Translations under genes and position numbers: made by a program
Shown here: one piece after another, positions 15,833-27,700 of the stretch
How positions within the stretch are numbered: the first letter of the stretch is position 1
Layout: each line of letters begins with the position of its first letter
Source of the DNA: Carpediemonas membranifera BICM
Lineage: Eukaryota; Protista; Fornicata
DNA length: 64,000 nucleotides
Reading direction: 5' to 3'
Assembly: GCA_019828565.1 (NCBI GenBank)
Contig: JAHDYR010000069.1
Coordinates: 372,001 to 436,000 of the forward strand
Notes under the pieces: model-generated
The model's database searches: none
What the model was told of the DNA's origin: nothing
Seen by the model: the letters and a program-made list of their open reading frames with translations, nothing else

Positions 15833-16696
15833 TCACTTGGCTACAGGTGTCCGCGGGGCGGCCCTGCTGCCTGGCCGGGACCTGCCACGGCTGGTGGGGC
15901 GGGAGGGCGACTTATGGCTAATGTTGGTGAGAGTGACCACGTCGCGCTCAAGCTGCTTGACCTTATCCCGCTGGGACTGGACCACGCTCTCGAGCTCCGC
16001 CTTCTGGGTCTTTAGGGCAGTGTTGGCAGCCAGTAGCGTCTTGTTCTTCCCGGCAGAGATGTCAAACTTCCGCTGGACCTCCGCAAGGTTGGCCTTGATA
16101 CCCATGATCTGCTCCTGCAGGTTCTTGTGGCGCACAGCGATCTCTCTGACGTTTGAGGCGTGCTGGTTCTTCTCAGTGTCGAACTTGGTCCTGAGATCCT
16201 TCGCCTCGCCCTGGAGGGACTTCAGCTCAGACTCGAGAGTCAGGTTCTTCTTCGTCTCGGCGTCTGCGATCTGCTGCATCTTGAGCTTCTCGGCGTCAGT
16301 AGTGTGCAGCTGATCGTTCAACTCGTTCTTCTGGGCATCGATCTCCTTGAGCTTGGCCTCGATGCGCTCGAGACGGACTTCGAGAGACTGTTTCTCCTTC
16401 TCAACTTGGAGGTTCTGCTTCTTAAGCATTTCAATCTGTGTAGTCATGCGAACTTCCGTCGAGGAGAGGGCGGTCTCCAAATCAGCAATGCGTTTCCGGT
16501 AGGCGGTGTTCTCCGCATCAAGCTCCTGTCTACGGCGAAGAAGCTGGTCTCTCTCGCGCGTGAGAGTCAGAAGCTGCGCTTTCTTCTCTGCTACGTCCGC
16601 CTTGAACACACGGGCTTCGCTGTCAATAGTAACAAGCGCCTGCTTGCGTTCCGCTTCAACTGCCTCAATCTTCGCTTTGAGATCGGCAACAGACAT
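15833..16696 (-). CDS. Coiled-coil protein
   Basis: Continuous heptad-rich K/E/Q/L sequence. Confidence 0.75.
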   Translation of the reverse strand: MSVADLKAKIEAVEAERKQALVTIDSEARVFKADVAEKKAQLLTLTRERDQLLRRRQELDAENTAYRKRIADLETALSSTEVRMTTQIEMLKKQNLQVEKEKQSLEVRLERIEAKLKEIDAQKNELNDQLHTTDAEKLKMQQIADAETKKNLTLESELKSLQGEAKDLRTKFDTEKNQHASNVREIAVRHKNLQEQIMGIKANLAEVQRKFDISAGKNKTLLAANTALKTQKAELESVVQSQRDKVKQLERDVVTLTNISHKSPSRPTSRGRSRPGSRAAPRTPVAK

Positions 16697-16798
16697 GGTA
16701 GTTCCGGGGGTGAAAATTTTCGCTGCGCATAAAATGCACTTGCCCCAACTGGAGTCTGCATATAGACGATTGAGAGTCCTACTTTATTGCTTGCACTG

Positions 16799-16817
16799 TG
16801 CACTCTATGATACTTCA
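16799..16817 (+). repeat. 19-bp direct repeat, left copy (TGCACTCTATGATACTTCA), flanking the Fanzor locus
   Basis: Identical to 18579-18597. Confidence 0.95.
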
Positions 16818-17005
16818 TTACCCCTTCCCGCTCCCTTCCTTCTTCTTGAGAGTGATACTTCGATAGTCAGTCATCATCGTCGGGGGTCATCAATCAGTGC
16901 TTCTCCAGTCCTCTCGCCAAGCAACTAGCTTCCCACCTATCGTCTACCCCATCTTACTTCCATCCGCTCTCTTCTGCTTGTCGGATTTCGGGGTCTTGAT
17001 CATGA

Positions 17006-18559
17006 CGTCTTGAATATGCCACGAGCACCAAGCTGTGGCTCGTCAAGGCCCTTGAAGGTTACTGCTGGCGCCTGGCGAAGATCATCACTCGGGTCGACAC
17101 TGCCCTGACTCAGCGTGATCCAGACGTGCCCCGGGACGACATCACCCGGTTGCGCACCGAACAACGCGCTGTCAAGGCGATCGTTGATGAGCACCTTGCA
17201 AAGATCTCAACTCCGGGACGAGTCGACGAGGGCGTTCTACTCACGCTGCCCTGCGTCTGGCGGATCTCCGCGGCTCTGGGAGAGCTCACGGATATGGTTG
17301 CGGCATTCAACACCGCCCATCCACCTCTTCCGGGTGACAAGCTGCTGGCTGGCCCCAAGCTTGTTCCGCTTGTCCCGATGGCTCCGATCCGCCCCGGGTT
17401 CATGCACGTTCCCTGTTCTCTCAACGTGCTGAACCCGGCTTGGCTTGCCCAACTTGGGGTCGACCCGGAGCATCACACCACTGAGCGCATGACCCGAGAG
17501 CAGCTGGAGGCTCTTCCTCCGAACATCCGTCGGGTGCTGTCTGTCAAGACAGATGGGGTCGCCGTAGACCTCACGGTCCAAGTTGGTGCTCTGCCATACG
17601 TCAGCAGACGTGCCAGTGGCAACCCGACGATGAAGCGAAAGGTTCGGGAGCGTCTGGGTGTGGATGACGCAGATGCTCGCCCCGCGCCAGACCCCGATGC
17701 CCACCTCATGGGTTTCGACCCGGGTGCTCGGGCTCTGGGTGGATTCTTCATCCGCCACCCAGATGGCACCACCAGCTCCGGTGTGGTCCCGAAGTGTGGG
17801 TACACCAAGACCCCCAGCTTCGCGTTCGACATGACTCCTGCGTCATTCAAAAGTACAAATCTAGATAGTCTACAAAACTCGATTAGGTTTGTGCTCCTCC
17901 ACGAGCAGGAAATATTCGACGCTGGGATGGTCAAGAGCTTCCGCAGAGTGCGCCTGACGAACCACATCTTGCGTCAAAAGCACTTCCACAGAGCTGGGGA
18001 GCTGCTTGCTCGCACCCTAGGATGGACTCCTCGGCGACTCCCTCGCGGTATTGCCCCTCCCCGGGCAGCCCCCACCAGGCTGGTTGTCTTCTACGGAAGC
18101 GCTAGATTCAAGACGCCCCGTCGGGTGCATCCATGCGCGCCGTATGGTCGCTTTGCAAAATCACTACCACACATCATGAGAGCTGTCAACATCACTGCTG
18201 AAGTGCGGATGACTAACGAGTTCCGAACCTCACTCGTCTGCCCCTTCTGCCGCGCGAGGTTCCGTAGAACTCGCTACACGAGGCGCACGATGCGATGCCA
18301 CAACCCGAATTGTCAAGGTGCTCCATGGTACAGACAGCAACGCCTCAATTCCGATCCTACCACCACTTGGCTCAATCTCTCCCACAGAGACAAGACTGCT
18401 GCACAGAACATCTTGGATTGCGGCCTCATGGCGGATGCACAGTATCAAGCCAGTGCTTTCAGAAATCCAAGACCTCCAGCCCGTCTTCCCAACTATAACC
18501 CCAATACACCAATTACGGCTAACCAGCCGCTAGTCTTCGCCTCCGGGCAAGCTAATTGA
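17006..18559 (+). CDS. Fanzor (Fanzor1-like, TnpB-derived) RNA-guided RuvC nuclease
   Basis: SVKTDGVAV; RuvC-I MGFDPG (D 17717); VVFYG; rearranged RuvC-II NEFRTS (E 18218); zinc finger CPFC...CHNPNC; RuvC-III HRDKTAAQNI (D 18389). The frame is open from 17006, but the first in-frame ATG is 17294. Confidence 0.9.
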   Translation, partial: RLEYATSTKLWLVKALEGYCWRLAKIITRVDTALTQRDPDVPRDDITRLRTEQRAVKAIVDEHLAKISTPGRVDEGVLLTLPCVWRISAALGELTDMVAAFNTAHPPLPGDKLLAGPKLVPLVPMAPIRPGFMHVPCSLNVLNPAWLAQLGVDPEHHTTERMTREQLEALPPNIRRVLSVKTDGVAVDLTVQVGALPYVSRRASGNPTMKRKVRERLGVDDADARPAPDPDAHLMGFDPGARALGGFFIRHPDGTTSSGVVPKCGYTKTPSFAFDMTPASFKSTNLDSLQNSIRFVLLHEQEIFDAGMVKSFRRVRLTNHILRQKHFHRAGELLARTLGWTPRRLPRGIAPPRAAPTRLVVFYGSARFKTPRRVHPCAPYGRFAKSLPHIMRAVNITAEVRMTNEFRTSLVCPFCRARFRRTRYTRRTMRCHNPNCQGAPWYRQQRLNSDPTTTWLNLSHRDKTAAQNILDCGLMADAQYQASAFRNPRPPARLPNYNPNTPITANQPLVFASGQAN

Positions 18560-18597
18560 AGTGGAGAGAGGCAGTGCTTGCACTCTATGATACTTCA
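18482..18597 (+). ncRNA. Candidate omegaRNA (scaffold overlapping the ORF 3' end, plus guide) of Fanzor copy 1
   Basis: Nucleotide blocks cgtcttc / caatt / ggctaacc and hairpin tag-ctt-gcc[tccg]ggc-aag-cta are shared with the paralogue despite indels. Boundaries inferred. Confidence 0.55.
18579..18597 (+). repeat. 19-bp direct repeat, right copy
   Basis: Identical to 16799-16817; begins 20 nt after the Fanzor stop codon. Confidence 0.95.
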
Positions 18598-18698
18598 CCA
18601 ACTGGTGCAAAAAAGTTTGCTTCAAACCGGATGACAAAATCCGATATGTCATCATATCTATTCCCTCCTCAACTATATCTATCCAACCGAACGAGTAT

Positions 18699-21314: not shown

Positions 21315-21394
21315 GTTGTGCAGTTTAAGGCGTGTAATATGGTGGTAAGAATTGTGCAATTGAAGGGTCGAACAACGTGTTTATACTGCGCAAC
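21315..21394 (+). repeat. Hairpin element, paralogue of 24634-24710
   Basis: gttgtgcagttt ... gaagggtcgaacaacgtgtttatactgcgcaac. The ends pair with each other and match the copy just downstream of Fanzor copy 2. Confidence 0.75.
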
Positions 21395-21492
21395 AAGAAT
21401 TCTGTAAACAATAGCGACCGCCAGTCGCCCTTCAGTAGTATTTATCCTTCAATGCGCCCTGCCTTCTCGCTATACTCTCAACTCTGCTCTGG

Positions 21493-23613: not shown

Positions 23614-23863
23614 TCATTTGCTGAAGGTTACTGACGTTGAATACACGATCGCTCATGCTTTTAGGTTTGCTTGAAGTGTGCTGTCACGAATTGAATCGAA
23701 GACTGCCCGAGAAAGTCACGATCTTGCCAGATCCGATCTTCTCGATCGAGGAAAAGATTTTTCGAGACTCAAAAACAATCGAGTGATCGTCTCAGTCCAT
23801 GATCTATGCCAGGCTTCCGTCTGCCCCAAGTGCATCGTGCAGTTTAGGACTAATGTCCGTGTG

Positions 23864-24014
23864 CGGCGTCCAGCAATGCCTGGGCTGCTGCCGCTGAGAC
23901 GAGGCCTGCAGATTGGGCGGGGGAGGGCTTGTTGGCGAGGAAGCGCTCCTTGGCGATGGCGTAGACCTCATCTGACCGAGTGAAGATGGACGCGACCGAG
24001 ATCCAGAGGCTAGC
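23864..24014 (+). repeat. 151-bp copy of 27273-27423 (dynein-like CDS) inserted with an 11-bp duplication
   Basis: 150 of 151 nt identical by eye; flanked by tgtccgtgtgc at 23854-23864 and 24016-24026. Confidence 0.93.
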
Positions 24015-24081
24015 GTGTCCGTGTGCACACGTCGTCTCATTGTCTTCTATTCCACATTAAATTCACTTCTACACTTGTATA

Positions 24082-24632
24082 GTTCGCCAGAAGCACTTCG
24101 CCCGCTGCGGCCAACACTTGGCTCGGGAGTTCGGTCGCCACCATCCCATCGCCACCCCCATTCGCCTGAAAGTCTTCTACGGGAGCTCGGGATTCACCAC
24201 GCCTGCTGGTATGTTCATTCCTTGTGCGCCATATCGAAAGTTCGCGAGAGAGATAGCACCCTTCTCAAGAGGTATAACATTGTCGTCGATCTTAACATGG
24301 TTAACGAGGATCGCACCACCGCCGTCTGCCCTCACTGCCACGCCCCCTACAAGCGAGTTCGTCCGCGTGATGACCAGCACGTTCACCCACATCGTGTGAT
24401 GCTCTGCGAAAATCCACAGTGCCGTGGTGCTCAGTGGCGCGCAACAGTTCCTGATGCTCTGAATGTTGATCATCGGGACAAGAGTGCTGCAGAGAACATC
24501 CTGTGGCGTTCTCTTGCCACGGAAGATGAGCTCAGTGGCTCTCCGTTCAGTCGCACATCGATCCCACGTCTTCAAACATCATTCCAGTATCATCAATTGG
24601 CTAACCGCCAACATTCGTCTACGGACGGATGA
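24082..24632 (+). pseudogene. Truncated, frameshifted Fanzor paralogue (C-terminal half)
   Basis: VRQKHFARCG..LKVFYGSSGF..PCAPYRKFA, a frameshift near 24262, then NEDRTTAVCPHC..CENPQC..HRDKSAAENIL. Aligns to the 17006-18559 protein; RuvC-I is missing. Confidence 0.88.
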
Positions 24633-24710
24633 TGTTGTGCAGTTTGGCACTTTGATCGTTCCTTTCAGGCCCTGTCTGGAGGTTCGAATAATGTGTTTAT
24701 ACTGCGCAAC
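24566..24710 (+). ncRNA. Candidate omegaRNA of Fanzor copy 2 plus downstream long hairpin
   Basis: cgtcttc / caatt / ggctaacc / cattcgtc[tacg]gacggatg hairpin, then a gttgtgcagt...actgcgcaac stem. Confidence 0.5.
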
Positions 24711-24792
24711 AGTCCGGCGAGGTCATGAGGGGCAAATCACGGATAATAAGGCTTTAAAGCAATACACAATGATACTATACATAGAGCGCACC

Positions 24793-27700
24793 TCAAGTAA
24801 ACAACGCGCCGACCTCCTCCTCGGTTGCTAGCGCCTGCTGCACATCCGAATGGTCGACACAAGCGTCGTCAAGGCTAGCCACGGCCGGCCCGAGCGTGCC
24901 TTCCTCCTTGCTGCCCACAACAATAGCCACCGACGCGATGATAGCATCCCCAACACAGTTCCTAGCCGAACCCCGGAGCCGCTGTAGCTCGCCAGCCCAC
25001 CGTGCAGCACTGCTCTCTGTCTCGTTCAGCTGGAGTGTTAGCTCATCCTTCTGGGCGATCAGCTCCTTGTACGCGTTCCTCTCCACCTGCAGCCCCTGGT
25101 CAATGGAGATGAACTCGACCTGGAGTCGGGTGACTGAGACAACAGAGGCCGCGATCCGGGCCTCGAGATTCCGGATCAGACCGGCATTCTTCTTTTGCGC
25201 GGCTACAACGGTGGAAAGCTGCTCGTTGCCAGGTACAATAGTGTCTTCACGAAGTCTGCAAGCACACAGATGGAGCACCGTGATCCGGAGAACGTGGTCG
25301 AGAAATGGGGTGGGGAGCGTGGGCAGGTCGACCTCGATGCGGCCAGCAGGGTCAACCACGGTGGTCACGTCGACGCTGGGCATGATCTCCCGCAGACGCT
25401 GCATTAAAGTGCGGGTTGTCGCCAGGTTGAGCATGCCGGGCTCGAGGCTTCCGATGTCGTCCACGAGCTTCCTGGCTGTGCCGAACAGTGTGCGGCGTAG
25501 CGTGGCGACTCGGGCGTCCTGGGTCACCCGGCCCGATGCGAACAGACGCGAGGCAGACGCCAGCACCATCGCCATGGCTGACACAGCCGTGATCAGACGA
25601 GTGTCACGGTCCGGGGCGCAGCTCATTGGATCGCCGCCTGAGATTGCCTTGAGCAGATGGCCGACGTGGGCCTTCAGCTGTGTTGCAATGGCAGCCAGTT
25701 GGGAGTCTGGCGCCTCAAGCTTGGCGCGGAGGCCGGCCGCCTTGTCGTCGAGGCTGCTGCCCGTCGTCTGGGCGGAGGACAAGGACTTCTGAAGCGATGT
25801 CTTCTGGGAGAACTCTGAGCCGAGCTGGGTCTCGAGCTCGGCAAGGGACTTGACACGCTGACCGATGGCTGATGCTTGCTCGGCGAGATTGCTTTCAATG
25901 GAGACAACCTTGTTCCGGAGACCTTGGACATGCTCTCCGGAACGCCGGAGAACTGTAAGGCGGGACGCGATACGGATCGACCGCTGAGTGAGCAGGCCGA
26001 TCATTGTCTGGAAAGCTGCAGGGAGCATTGAATCTGGTGCAACGCGAAGCACAGCGCCGACGAGAGCAATGGCAGTAGTCTTGGCAGATGCAGTCGTCAG
26101 AAGCACTGGTATCGCACCCGCTACAGCAGCGGCATATGGCTTTCCTTGGAGCGCGGCGACAGTTCGGCCATGCTCTTCCAACCGGGTCCCGATCGGCACC
26201 GGCTTGGCCGCCTTGTTGACTGCGCCACCCACAGGCGGGGTCGACGGCCTGCCCGCCGCTAGAGCGGACCAGAGGCTCATAGACGACGTCGGCCGGGCAG
26301 GGTAGGCATGGGAGTCGCCCCGGGCCCCGGCCAACGTTCGCATGGCCGCGGCAACTGCGTCAGCGAGCTCTGCGGGGGTTTGGTCTCTGAGGACGAGGGT
26401 CGGGGCGGGTCTGGCGGCGGGGCCGTGGGCGATGATGTGGATCGATCGCCCAGTGGATGCAATCAATTGATTAATAACAATCGGGGCGTCCTCGATTGCC
26501 GTAGCGCTGCGGAGACGGACGAGCGTCTTTGCTAGGACCGCGCGGCAGTCTGGTCGATCGTTGAAGAGTGTCTCAGAATACCCGAAGAGCACGAGCTCGG
26601 ACAGGCTGCCGAGGACGGCGGGGTCAGCCTCGTCGGGCACACTTAGGAAGAGCAGCACGTCCTTGTGGTGTCTCACACAGACCGCCAGTGCTGCGCAGTA
26701 CGCCTCGGCCAGGTTGGCCATGTTTGACCCGTCGAGACTGACTGGGACGAGTCGGCCTTCATCAGTTGATGACTGGAGAGCGACTGCCATGAGTTGGATG
26801 AGCAAGGGCGTGGGACAGGACGTCTCTATGAAAGCTGAGCCCGTGCCAGTGACTGGAGACGATGCGGACGAGAGTGCCGCGCAGGATAAGGACAGCAGCG
26901 GGGGTCTGGTCGCGAGGAGCATCGAGAGCGAGGCGACCCACTCGAGAGCGGCAGCGTGGGCGGGGACGAAGTCATCGGGGCCGTGTGTGACTGAGAACAT
27001 CGCCCCCAGGGCCCCCAGGGCTTGGTCAGCCCAGTTGGCCGTCGTGGGGGTAAGCTTGGGGCGGTGGCGACCCTTGGGCTTCAGGGGTTCCGGCACGCCG
27101 GAAACTGGGATGAGTACCGGAATAACTGTGCCGCTGGAATATTCCGGCACATCTGTCTGAGAGACAACAGATAAGGCGCCGTGGAGGTATTCCGACAACG
27201 AGACCGCTTTGATCATACGCTGGGAGGAAGTCCGTATGACCCGCCCCGTGAGATCTGGGACAAGGACGATGCCGGCGTCCAGCAATGCCTGGGCTGCTGC
27301 CGCTGAGACGAGGCCTGCAGATTGGGCGGGGGAGGGCTTGTTGGCGAGGAAGCGCTCCTTGGCGATGGCGTAGACCTCATCTGACCGAGTGAAGATGGAC
27401 GCGACCGAGATCCAGAGGTTAGCCAGGCGGTCAACGTCTTCAGCACGAGACGCCGTGACGGCCGAGAGAACGGACCGCAGCACCATCAGGGCACAGGGGG
27501 TCGGCCCGCAGAGCTCGAGCGTGGCTGCGACAAGGACAGCCGATTGGGTGGCCAGCGCGGGCTTGGGCGCCAGTGTTTCCTGCGCGGCGGCCGTGAGGAG
27601 GGTTTTCATGGTGTGGGCGATCATGGCACGCGGCACAATGACGGGGAAGACGCCGGGGGCGGGCTGGGTCTCGTTGCAGGGAGCCGAGAGCGAGAGGGTG

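Follow-up and report, generated by a model that had tools for sequence, protein, structure and literature searches.

Fanzor1 nucleases are known, and elements that carry only a TnpB-type gene are common; the new part of the system described here is its carrier. In the Fanzor1 elements described to date, all of which are DNA transposons, the TAM either abuts or encompasses the 5' duplication (PMC13565253), and the known Fanzor1 enzymes, whose TAMs touch the target, cut 14-21 nt into it (PMC10432273). A 2026 review sees no evidence that any retrotransposon encodes a Fanzor, and the Ty3 elements lying near SpuFz were regarded by Saito et al. as chance insertions. In the literature, we found neither a description of a carrier of the present type, in which a Fanzor1 gene lies between Ty3-derived ends, nor any work linking Fanzor and Carpediemonas.

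The window, a stretch of 64,000 nt from the metamonad Carpediemonas membranifera BICM (contig JAHDYR010000069.1, positions 372,001 to 436,000; all coordinates below are those of the window), contains an open frame at 17006-18559 on the + strand, which we confirmed to run from stop to stop and to lack a start codon. As an earlier note made from the sequence alone had recognized, it lies between two minus-strand host genes, which encode a coiled-coil protein (15833..16696) and a tRNA_bind protein, and belongs to a lineage-specific family in a metamonad host. The frame shows the motifs TDG (17549), GFDPG, VFYG, NEFRTS, CxxC...CxxxxC and HRDK, with the RuvC Asp codon at 17717-19, the Gly of VFYG at 18095-97, the RuvC Glu at 18218-20 and the second Asp of the triad at 18389-91. 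Six residues separate the RuvC Glu from the first Cys of the C4 finger. The D-E-D triad, TDG, finger and VFYG Gly reported in the note could all be located, and they are conserved across the three subfamilies that we find in this genome (A, to which the window copy belongs, B and C); single-copy defects aside, the catalytic residues and the finger are retained throughout, with D236, E403, D460 and the Cys pairs invariant (numbering of the full-length protein). A Glu about six residues ahead of the zinc finger, with a Gly at the canonical position, is the Fanzor arrangement (PMC13565253), and the E403/C410 spacing and the VFYG motif conform to it.

On its profile and fold matches, the encoded protein is to be classed as a divergent Fanzor1, nearer to Fanzor1 than to Fanzor2, TnpB or Cas12f, in agreement with the earlier assignment. 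A profile built with three outside Fanzor1-like proteins among its members recovers PpFz1 (3e-10), GtFz1 (2.5e-8) and SpuFz1 (1e-7), with Cas12f far behind (E 0.009), and the top three Foldseek matches of a structure model are all SpuFz. The structure models themselves are weak (pLDDT 56 for the one used with Foldseek, 44 for the other); when the RuvC part was compared using VIA-align, Fanzor2 and Cas12p tied, so the fold alone cannot separate the clades. The structural look-alikes in the Atlas are DUF8286/TNB clusters, Pfam gives only a TNB match below threshold for the window frame, and a word-based homolog search returns Carpediemonas proteins only. With SpuFz1, GtFz1 and PpFz1 (PMC10432273; PDB 8gkh, 9cer, 9cf0) the family has in common the triad, the finger-side Glu, TDG and DPG, as well as its full size (665 aa) and a hairpin after the stop codon at the right end, and Spu-1 is likewise an element without an internal transposase; however, the identity to known Fanzor1 proteins is only ~13-20%. 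The nearest outside sequences (P0052, P0053, P0055 and P0056; E 4e-7 to 5e-4) come from giant-virus-like contigs and Mucorales, and are linked to the family by HHalign at 97% and by their membership of DUF8286/TNB families, with only 21-23% identity. Two contexts of the outside Fanzor1-like proteins were read, and both are gene-dense contigs, one of them with virus-like genes.

Comparison with sibling copies shows what the window frame is. A full-length family A element measures ~2.49 kb and has an ORF of 665 codons, from which a 634-bp internal deletion, with its junction at 17011..17012 on the + strand, has removed the 5' leader, the ATG and codons 1-148 in the window copy. What is left (17012..18559, +) is a remnant ORF of codons 149-665 with the D-E-D triad and C4 finger, whose first in-frame ATG, at 17294, would give 421 aa. 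The descriptions 'catalytically intact' and 'compact (420-520 aa)' therefore fall away. A low-confidence model of the lost part shows a strand followed by a bundle of helices, and this part is probably the start of the WED/REC lobe, which is accordingly incomplete in this copy. The genome yields 86 scored matches, some of which are pieces of one copy, and the three subfamilies together amount to at least ~70 copies. Subfamily A is 93-98% identical (mean identity of its copies 97.3%), while B and C stand at ~45-50%. Variation among family A copies is neutral (pN/pS 1.00), and no intact copy was seen among those fetched; some subfamily B matches have no internal stop. The suggestion of an active or recently active family thus stands with respect to recent mobility, given copies 97% identical, and fails for the window copy as a nuclease. 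We regard this copy as a dead, internally deleted member of a non-autonomous element whose sole gene encodes a Fanzor1; the copy is of no use in itself.

Chimeric copies are also present: in L017/L059, L018 and L011 family A 5' parts are fused to 3' parts of B or C, and in the protein P0004 a family A 5' part and a B/C 3' part are joined in frame. At one further locus, L057, the right flank is that of L035 but the left flank is a different one, and the duplications of L056 do not match; these flank mismatches are probably due to recombination between copies or to misassembly.

The element spans 16750-18597, starts with TG, ends with CA and is flanked by CCAAC, with the left duplication at 16745..16749 and the right one at 18598..18602; a guide would be predicted to start in or just after the latter. 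The absence of a transposase noted earlier holds for the element, but the reported lack of TIRs had passed over these TG...CA ends, a 6-bp imperfect inverted repeat (the only one at the termini), the CCAAC duplication and a 19-bp perfect direct repeat. A perfect 5-nt duplication is seen in 12 of 16 two-ended copies. The left terminal unit (16750..16817, 68 nt, TG...CA) is 59-70 nt long in three variants across sibling copies, and is adjoined by a polypurine tract on the minus strand (16818..16845). The right unit (18557..18597, +), likewise of TG...CA form, begins at the stop codon and folds into a predicted hairpin (z -2.8); it is 48 nt long in the siblings and 7 nt shorter here. In all copies the two units have their last 30 nt in common, in the left unit of the window copy at 16788..16817. 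Subfamily B, whose DNA is unrelated, follows the same plan of a purine tract, a TG...CA unit and a ~30-nt repeat. There are ~25 solo left units without any interior in the genome, which would have arisen by recombination between the two 30-nt repeats, as do solo LTRs; by contrast, no solo right unit was found at the target motif, and we therefore reject independently mobile right units. The 19-bp repeat can be dismissed as a target duplication or guide match, since every copy has it within the element itself. The right unit is probably the 3' part of the omegaRNA scaffold; an Rfam search for an omegaRNA gave no match. Relative to known Fanzor1 elements, family A differs in its stop-to-end gap of only ~45 nt, the lack of long TIRs, a variable 5-bp duplication in place of TA, and the lack of fixed TAM-like bases beside the left end.

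The insertion site follows a one-sided rule. A promoter- or initiator-like motif, [GT]YGCAGKWTW, lies on the strand of the host gene (16730..16739, -), so that its TGC, read on the + strand at 16735-16737, is 12 nt from the element. In 14 of the 17 flanks read, and in 20 of 22 left units genome-wide, this TGC occupies -15..-13 relative to the left end, as against a chance expectation of ~1 in 64 per site, while the right flanks have no motif and are unrelated to one another. The host ORFs are directed away from the left end, with their starts most often 39-67 nt off; in the window copy the insertion lies in the promoter of the coiled-coil gene, with the ATG 53 nt from the element edge. Upstream of the window's ORFs the motif is found in sense for 6 of 33 (one of these being the insertion site) and in antisense for none, compared to a mean of 1.2 and a maximum of 5 in shuffled controls. 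From this sense-only occurrence, it is probably a core-promoter element. No base is fixed at -10..-1 before the element, and there is no conserved TAM directly 5' of it or in the duplication. Accordingly, homing would require a TAM that is relaxed or lies at a distance; otherwise the nuclease does something different. A Fanzor1 with such a TAM, as this lack of fixed bases predicts, would matter both for the mechanism and for editing tools.

The ends and the target register both lead to a resident Ty3 lineage. In L013 an element ends with a chromodomain-like C-terminus (E 0.002, below the Pfam cut-off), a purine tract and then a 96-bp LTR, with an rve match 1 kb upstream; on three contigs the same LTR is present as two copies spaced 4.2 kb apart. 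Its U5 end equals the outer left end of family A over 9 nt (14 nt for the third unit variant), and its opposite end equals, over 11 nt, the left end of family B. Five of ~8 outward-facing Ty3 LTR ends lie 12 nt from a TGC, that is, in the family A register, and the element and Ty3 have one orientation, both 12 nt from the promoter-like motif. On contig C68 a Ty3 and a family A copy stand side by side at one site with a common duplication, GGGAC. This link to Ty3, along with the same plan in subfamily B, supports insertion by the same machinery, and we consider integrase-driven insertion of the element well supported. What the earlier note overlooked is that the gene is carried as cargo by a multi-copy element whose ends derive from an LTR and which is targeted to promoters.

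Non-autonomous LTR elements are known as the TRIM/LARD type. With these and with the resident chromovirus-type Ty3, the element has in common its TG...CA ends, the 5-bp duplication, the purine tract, solo terminal units, the LTR end and the target register; it differs from them in that its units agree over no more than 30 nt, a primer site is lacking, and the cargo is an antisense Fanzor gene. TG...CA termini with a duplication in the 4-6-bp range and a polypurine tract before the 3' LTR are both present. Two identical LTRs at insertion are not found, with only the 30 nt common in all copies, and a tRNA primer site (TGG-type) is absent after the equivalent of the 5' LTR. The Ty3 LTR is followed at the expected primer-site position by a perfect 10-nt palindrome (L042:895-910), which the Fanzor element also lacks. 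The terminal units differ consistently, and this counts against standard LTR reverse transcription, which would erase such differences. Strictly tested, then, the element falls outside the non-autonomous LTR class, even though its insertion is of that kind. This 24-Mb genome has at least 150 matches to the rve integrase domain above the Pfam cut-off (716 candidates). When 31 matches to the purine-tract/unit junction were compared with the 150 listed of the 716 rve candidates, no autonomous element with the same junction emerged, and in a search for rve the 100 end matches listed and the 31 junction matches included no partner that has these termini together with a transposase. As for the traffic at these sites, the terminal repeat of subfamily B itself holds the target motif (L013:3490-3525; L015; L018), so other elements insert at its end, such as the Ty3 in L013, and pile up at common sites. 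At L045:1409-1500, a solo 92-nt B unit with its own duplication, TCACC, lies across the right end of a family A copy.

We posit that the element is very likely inserted in trans by the integrase of the resident Ty3 lineage. Its substrate would be, on roughly even chances, a cDNA made by the helper reverse transcriptase from the strand opposite the Fanzor gene, with non-standard priming. With a little under even confidence, we further propose that intact ancestors supplied a Fanzor protein and an omegaRNA ending in the right flank, which would cut empty alleles of the element's own sites and have the element copied in by repair from the filled allele (homing). Aborted repair would leave left-truncated copies with longer duplications. 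The complete scenario, in which Fanzor1 spreads on a never-excising Ty3-derived retroelement, delivered to core promoters by the helper integrase and driven by homing without an adjacent TAM or via a motif at least 10 nt away, is offered tentatively. There is only a hint of element expression: in run X1 (possibly RNA, and apparently the same data as X2) the two host genes are covered by Logan contigs that end at the gene borders, and the element by contigs of sibling copies, which accumulate over its last 250 nt; contigs give no strand, ends or level.

The six copies without a left unit bear on the homing step. Their duplications still start at TGC+7, with lengths of 5, 6, 7, 10, 11 and 12 nt and often with filler DNA. 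Plain deletion after insertion cannot explain them, because bases of the right flank have been added on the left. One-ended integration finished by host repair usually gives much longer duplications (PMC5041404), while the 14-21 nt cut position of Fanzor1 enzymes sets a bound on duplications produced by cutting and aborted copying. Both of these known processes can add such bases; as an inference, we slightly favor the second, in which the empty allele is cut and copying from the filled one is then aborted. The Fanzor1-only CRe elements of Chlamydomonas (CRe-1/2/3) show the same truncation pattern, which was left unexplained there: they, too, have intact 3' ends, 5' truncations, filler at the 5' junction and variable duplications, of 7-19 bp as against 5-12 here, which in both cases begin at the usual target position (PMC3627910). 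However, CRe elements are Helitron derivatives whose complete copies lack a duplication (PMC3627910), whereas the complete copies here have the 5-bp duplication of an integrase.

Several features of the family could also be accommodated by a non-autonomous cut-and-paste DNA transposon with very short inverted ends, moved by an integrase-like DDE transposase of the Ginger/IS481EU type with the same promoter targeting; the Fanzor would act in ordinary restorative homing after excision. The 6-bp imperfect inverted ends with a 5-bp duplication, the non-identical terminal units, the frequent internal deletions that keep both ends, as after gap repair, and the precedent of the described Fanzor1 carriers all sit well with such a transposon. 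What renders it an unlikely account in our estimate is the purine tract, placed as it would be next to an LTR in two subfamilies whose DNA is unrelated, the match of the termini to a real Ty3 LTR with both site and duplication in common, and the occurrence of solo units of the left but not of the right kind.

If the Fanzor itself read the motif as a distant TAM and opened or marked the site, targeting would come from the nuclease rather than from an integrase, in keeping with a one-sided motif at a fixed distance and a duplication start that is invariant even in truncated copies; yet the identical register is seen for Ty3 elements that have no Fanzor, the right flanks are mutually unrelated, so that site choice is not explained by a guide, and known TAMs touch their targets (PMC10432273). 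We thus judge it improbable. Even less credible, to the point of being nearly dismissed, is the view that this locus simply has an intact nuclease gene, compact and standing alone. Its 515 codons without a stop, its intact triad and the record of a 421-aa product in a protein collection (P0002) would speak for it, but with no start codon before 17294 any product would be missing 242 of 665 residues, the right-end hairpin is shortened, variation is neutral, and the sibling copies contradict it. The Ty3-derived carrier with an internally deleted Fanzor1 cargo is our preferred reading of the locus, with moderate confidence.

Other traces of the family are seen nearby and in other data. Run X5, which is labeled as another organism, has a 338-nt contig nearly identical to 18213-18550, and may represent a mixed culture or a mislabel. 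Between two genes at 21316-21395 lies an orphan unit akin to the right end of subfamily C (35 nt, 89%), at which a clean duplication was not seen. A subfamily C remnant at 23822-24711 (87-97% to P0010/P0007) ends in CA and has a 5-nt duplication, GTCCG; the promoter-like motif ~14 nt before it reads towards the element, unlike in family A. At its truncated left junction, 23864-24014 equals 27273-27423 at 99%; this 151-nt piece of host DNA, whose source lies 3.4 kb away, reads from the sequence as a templated repair insertion.
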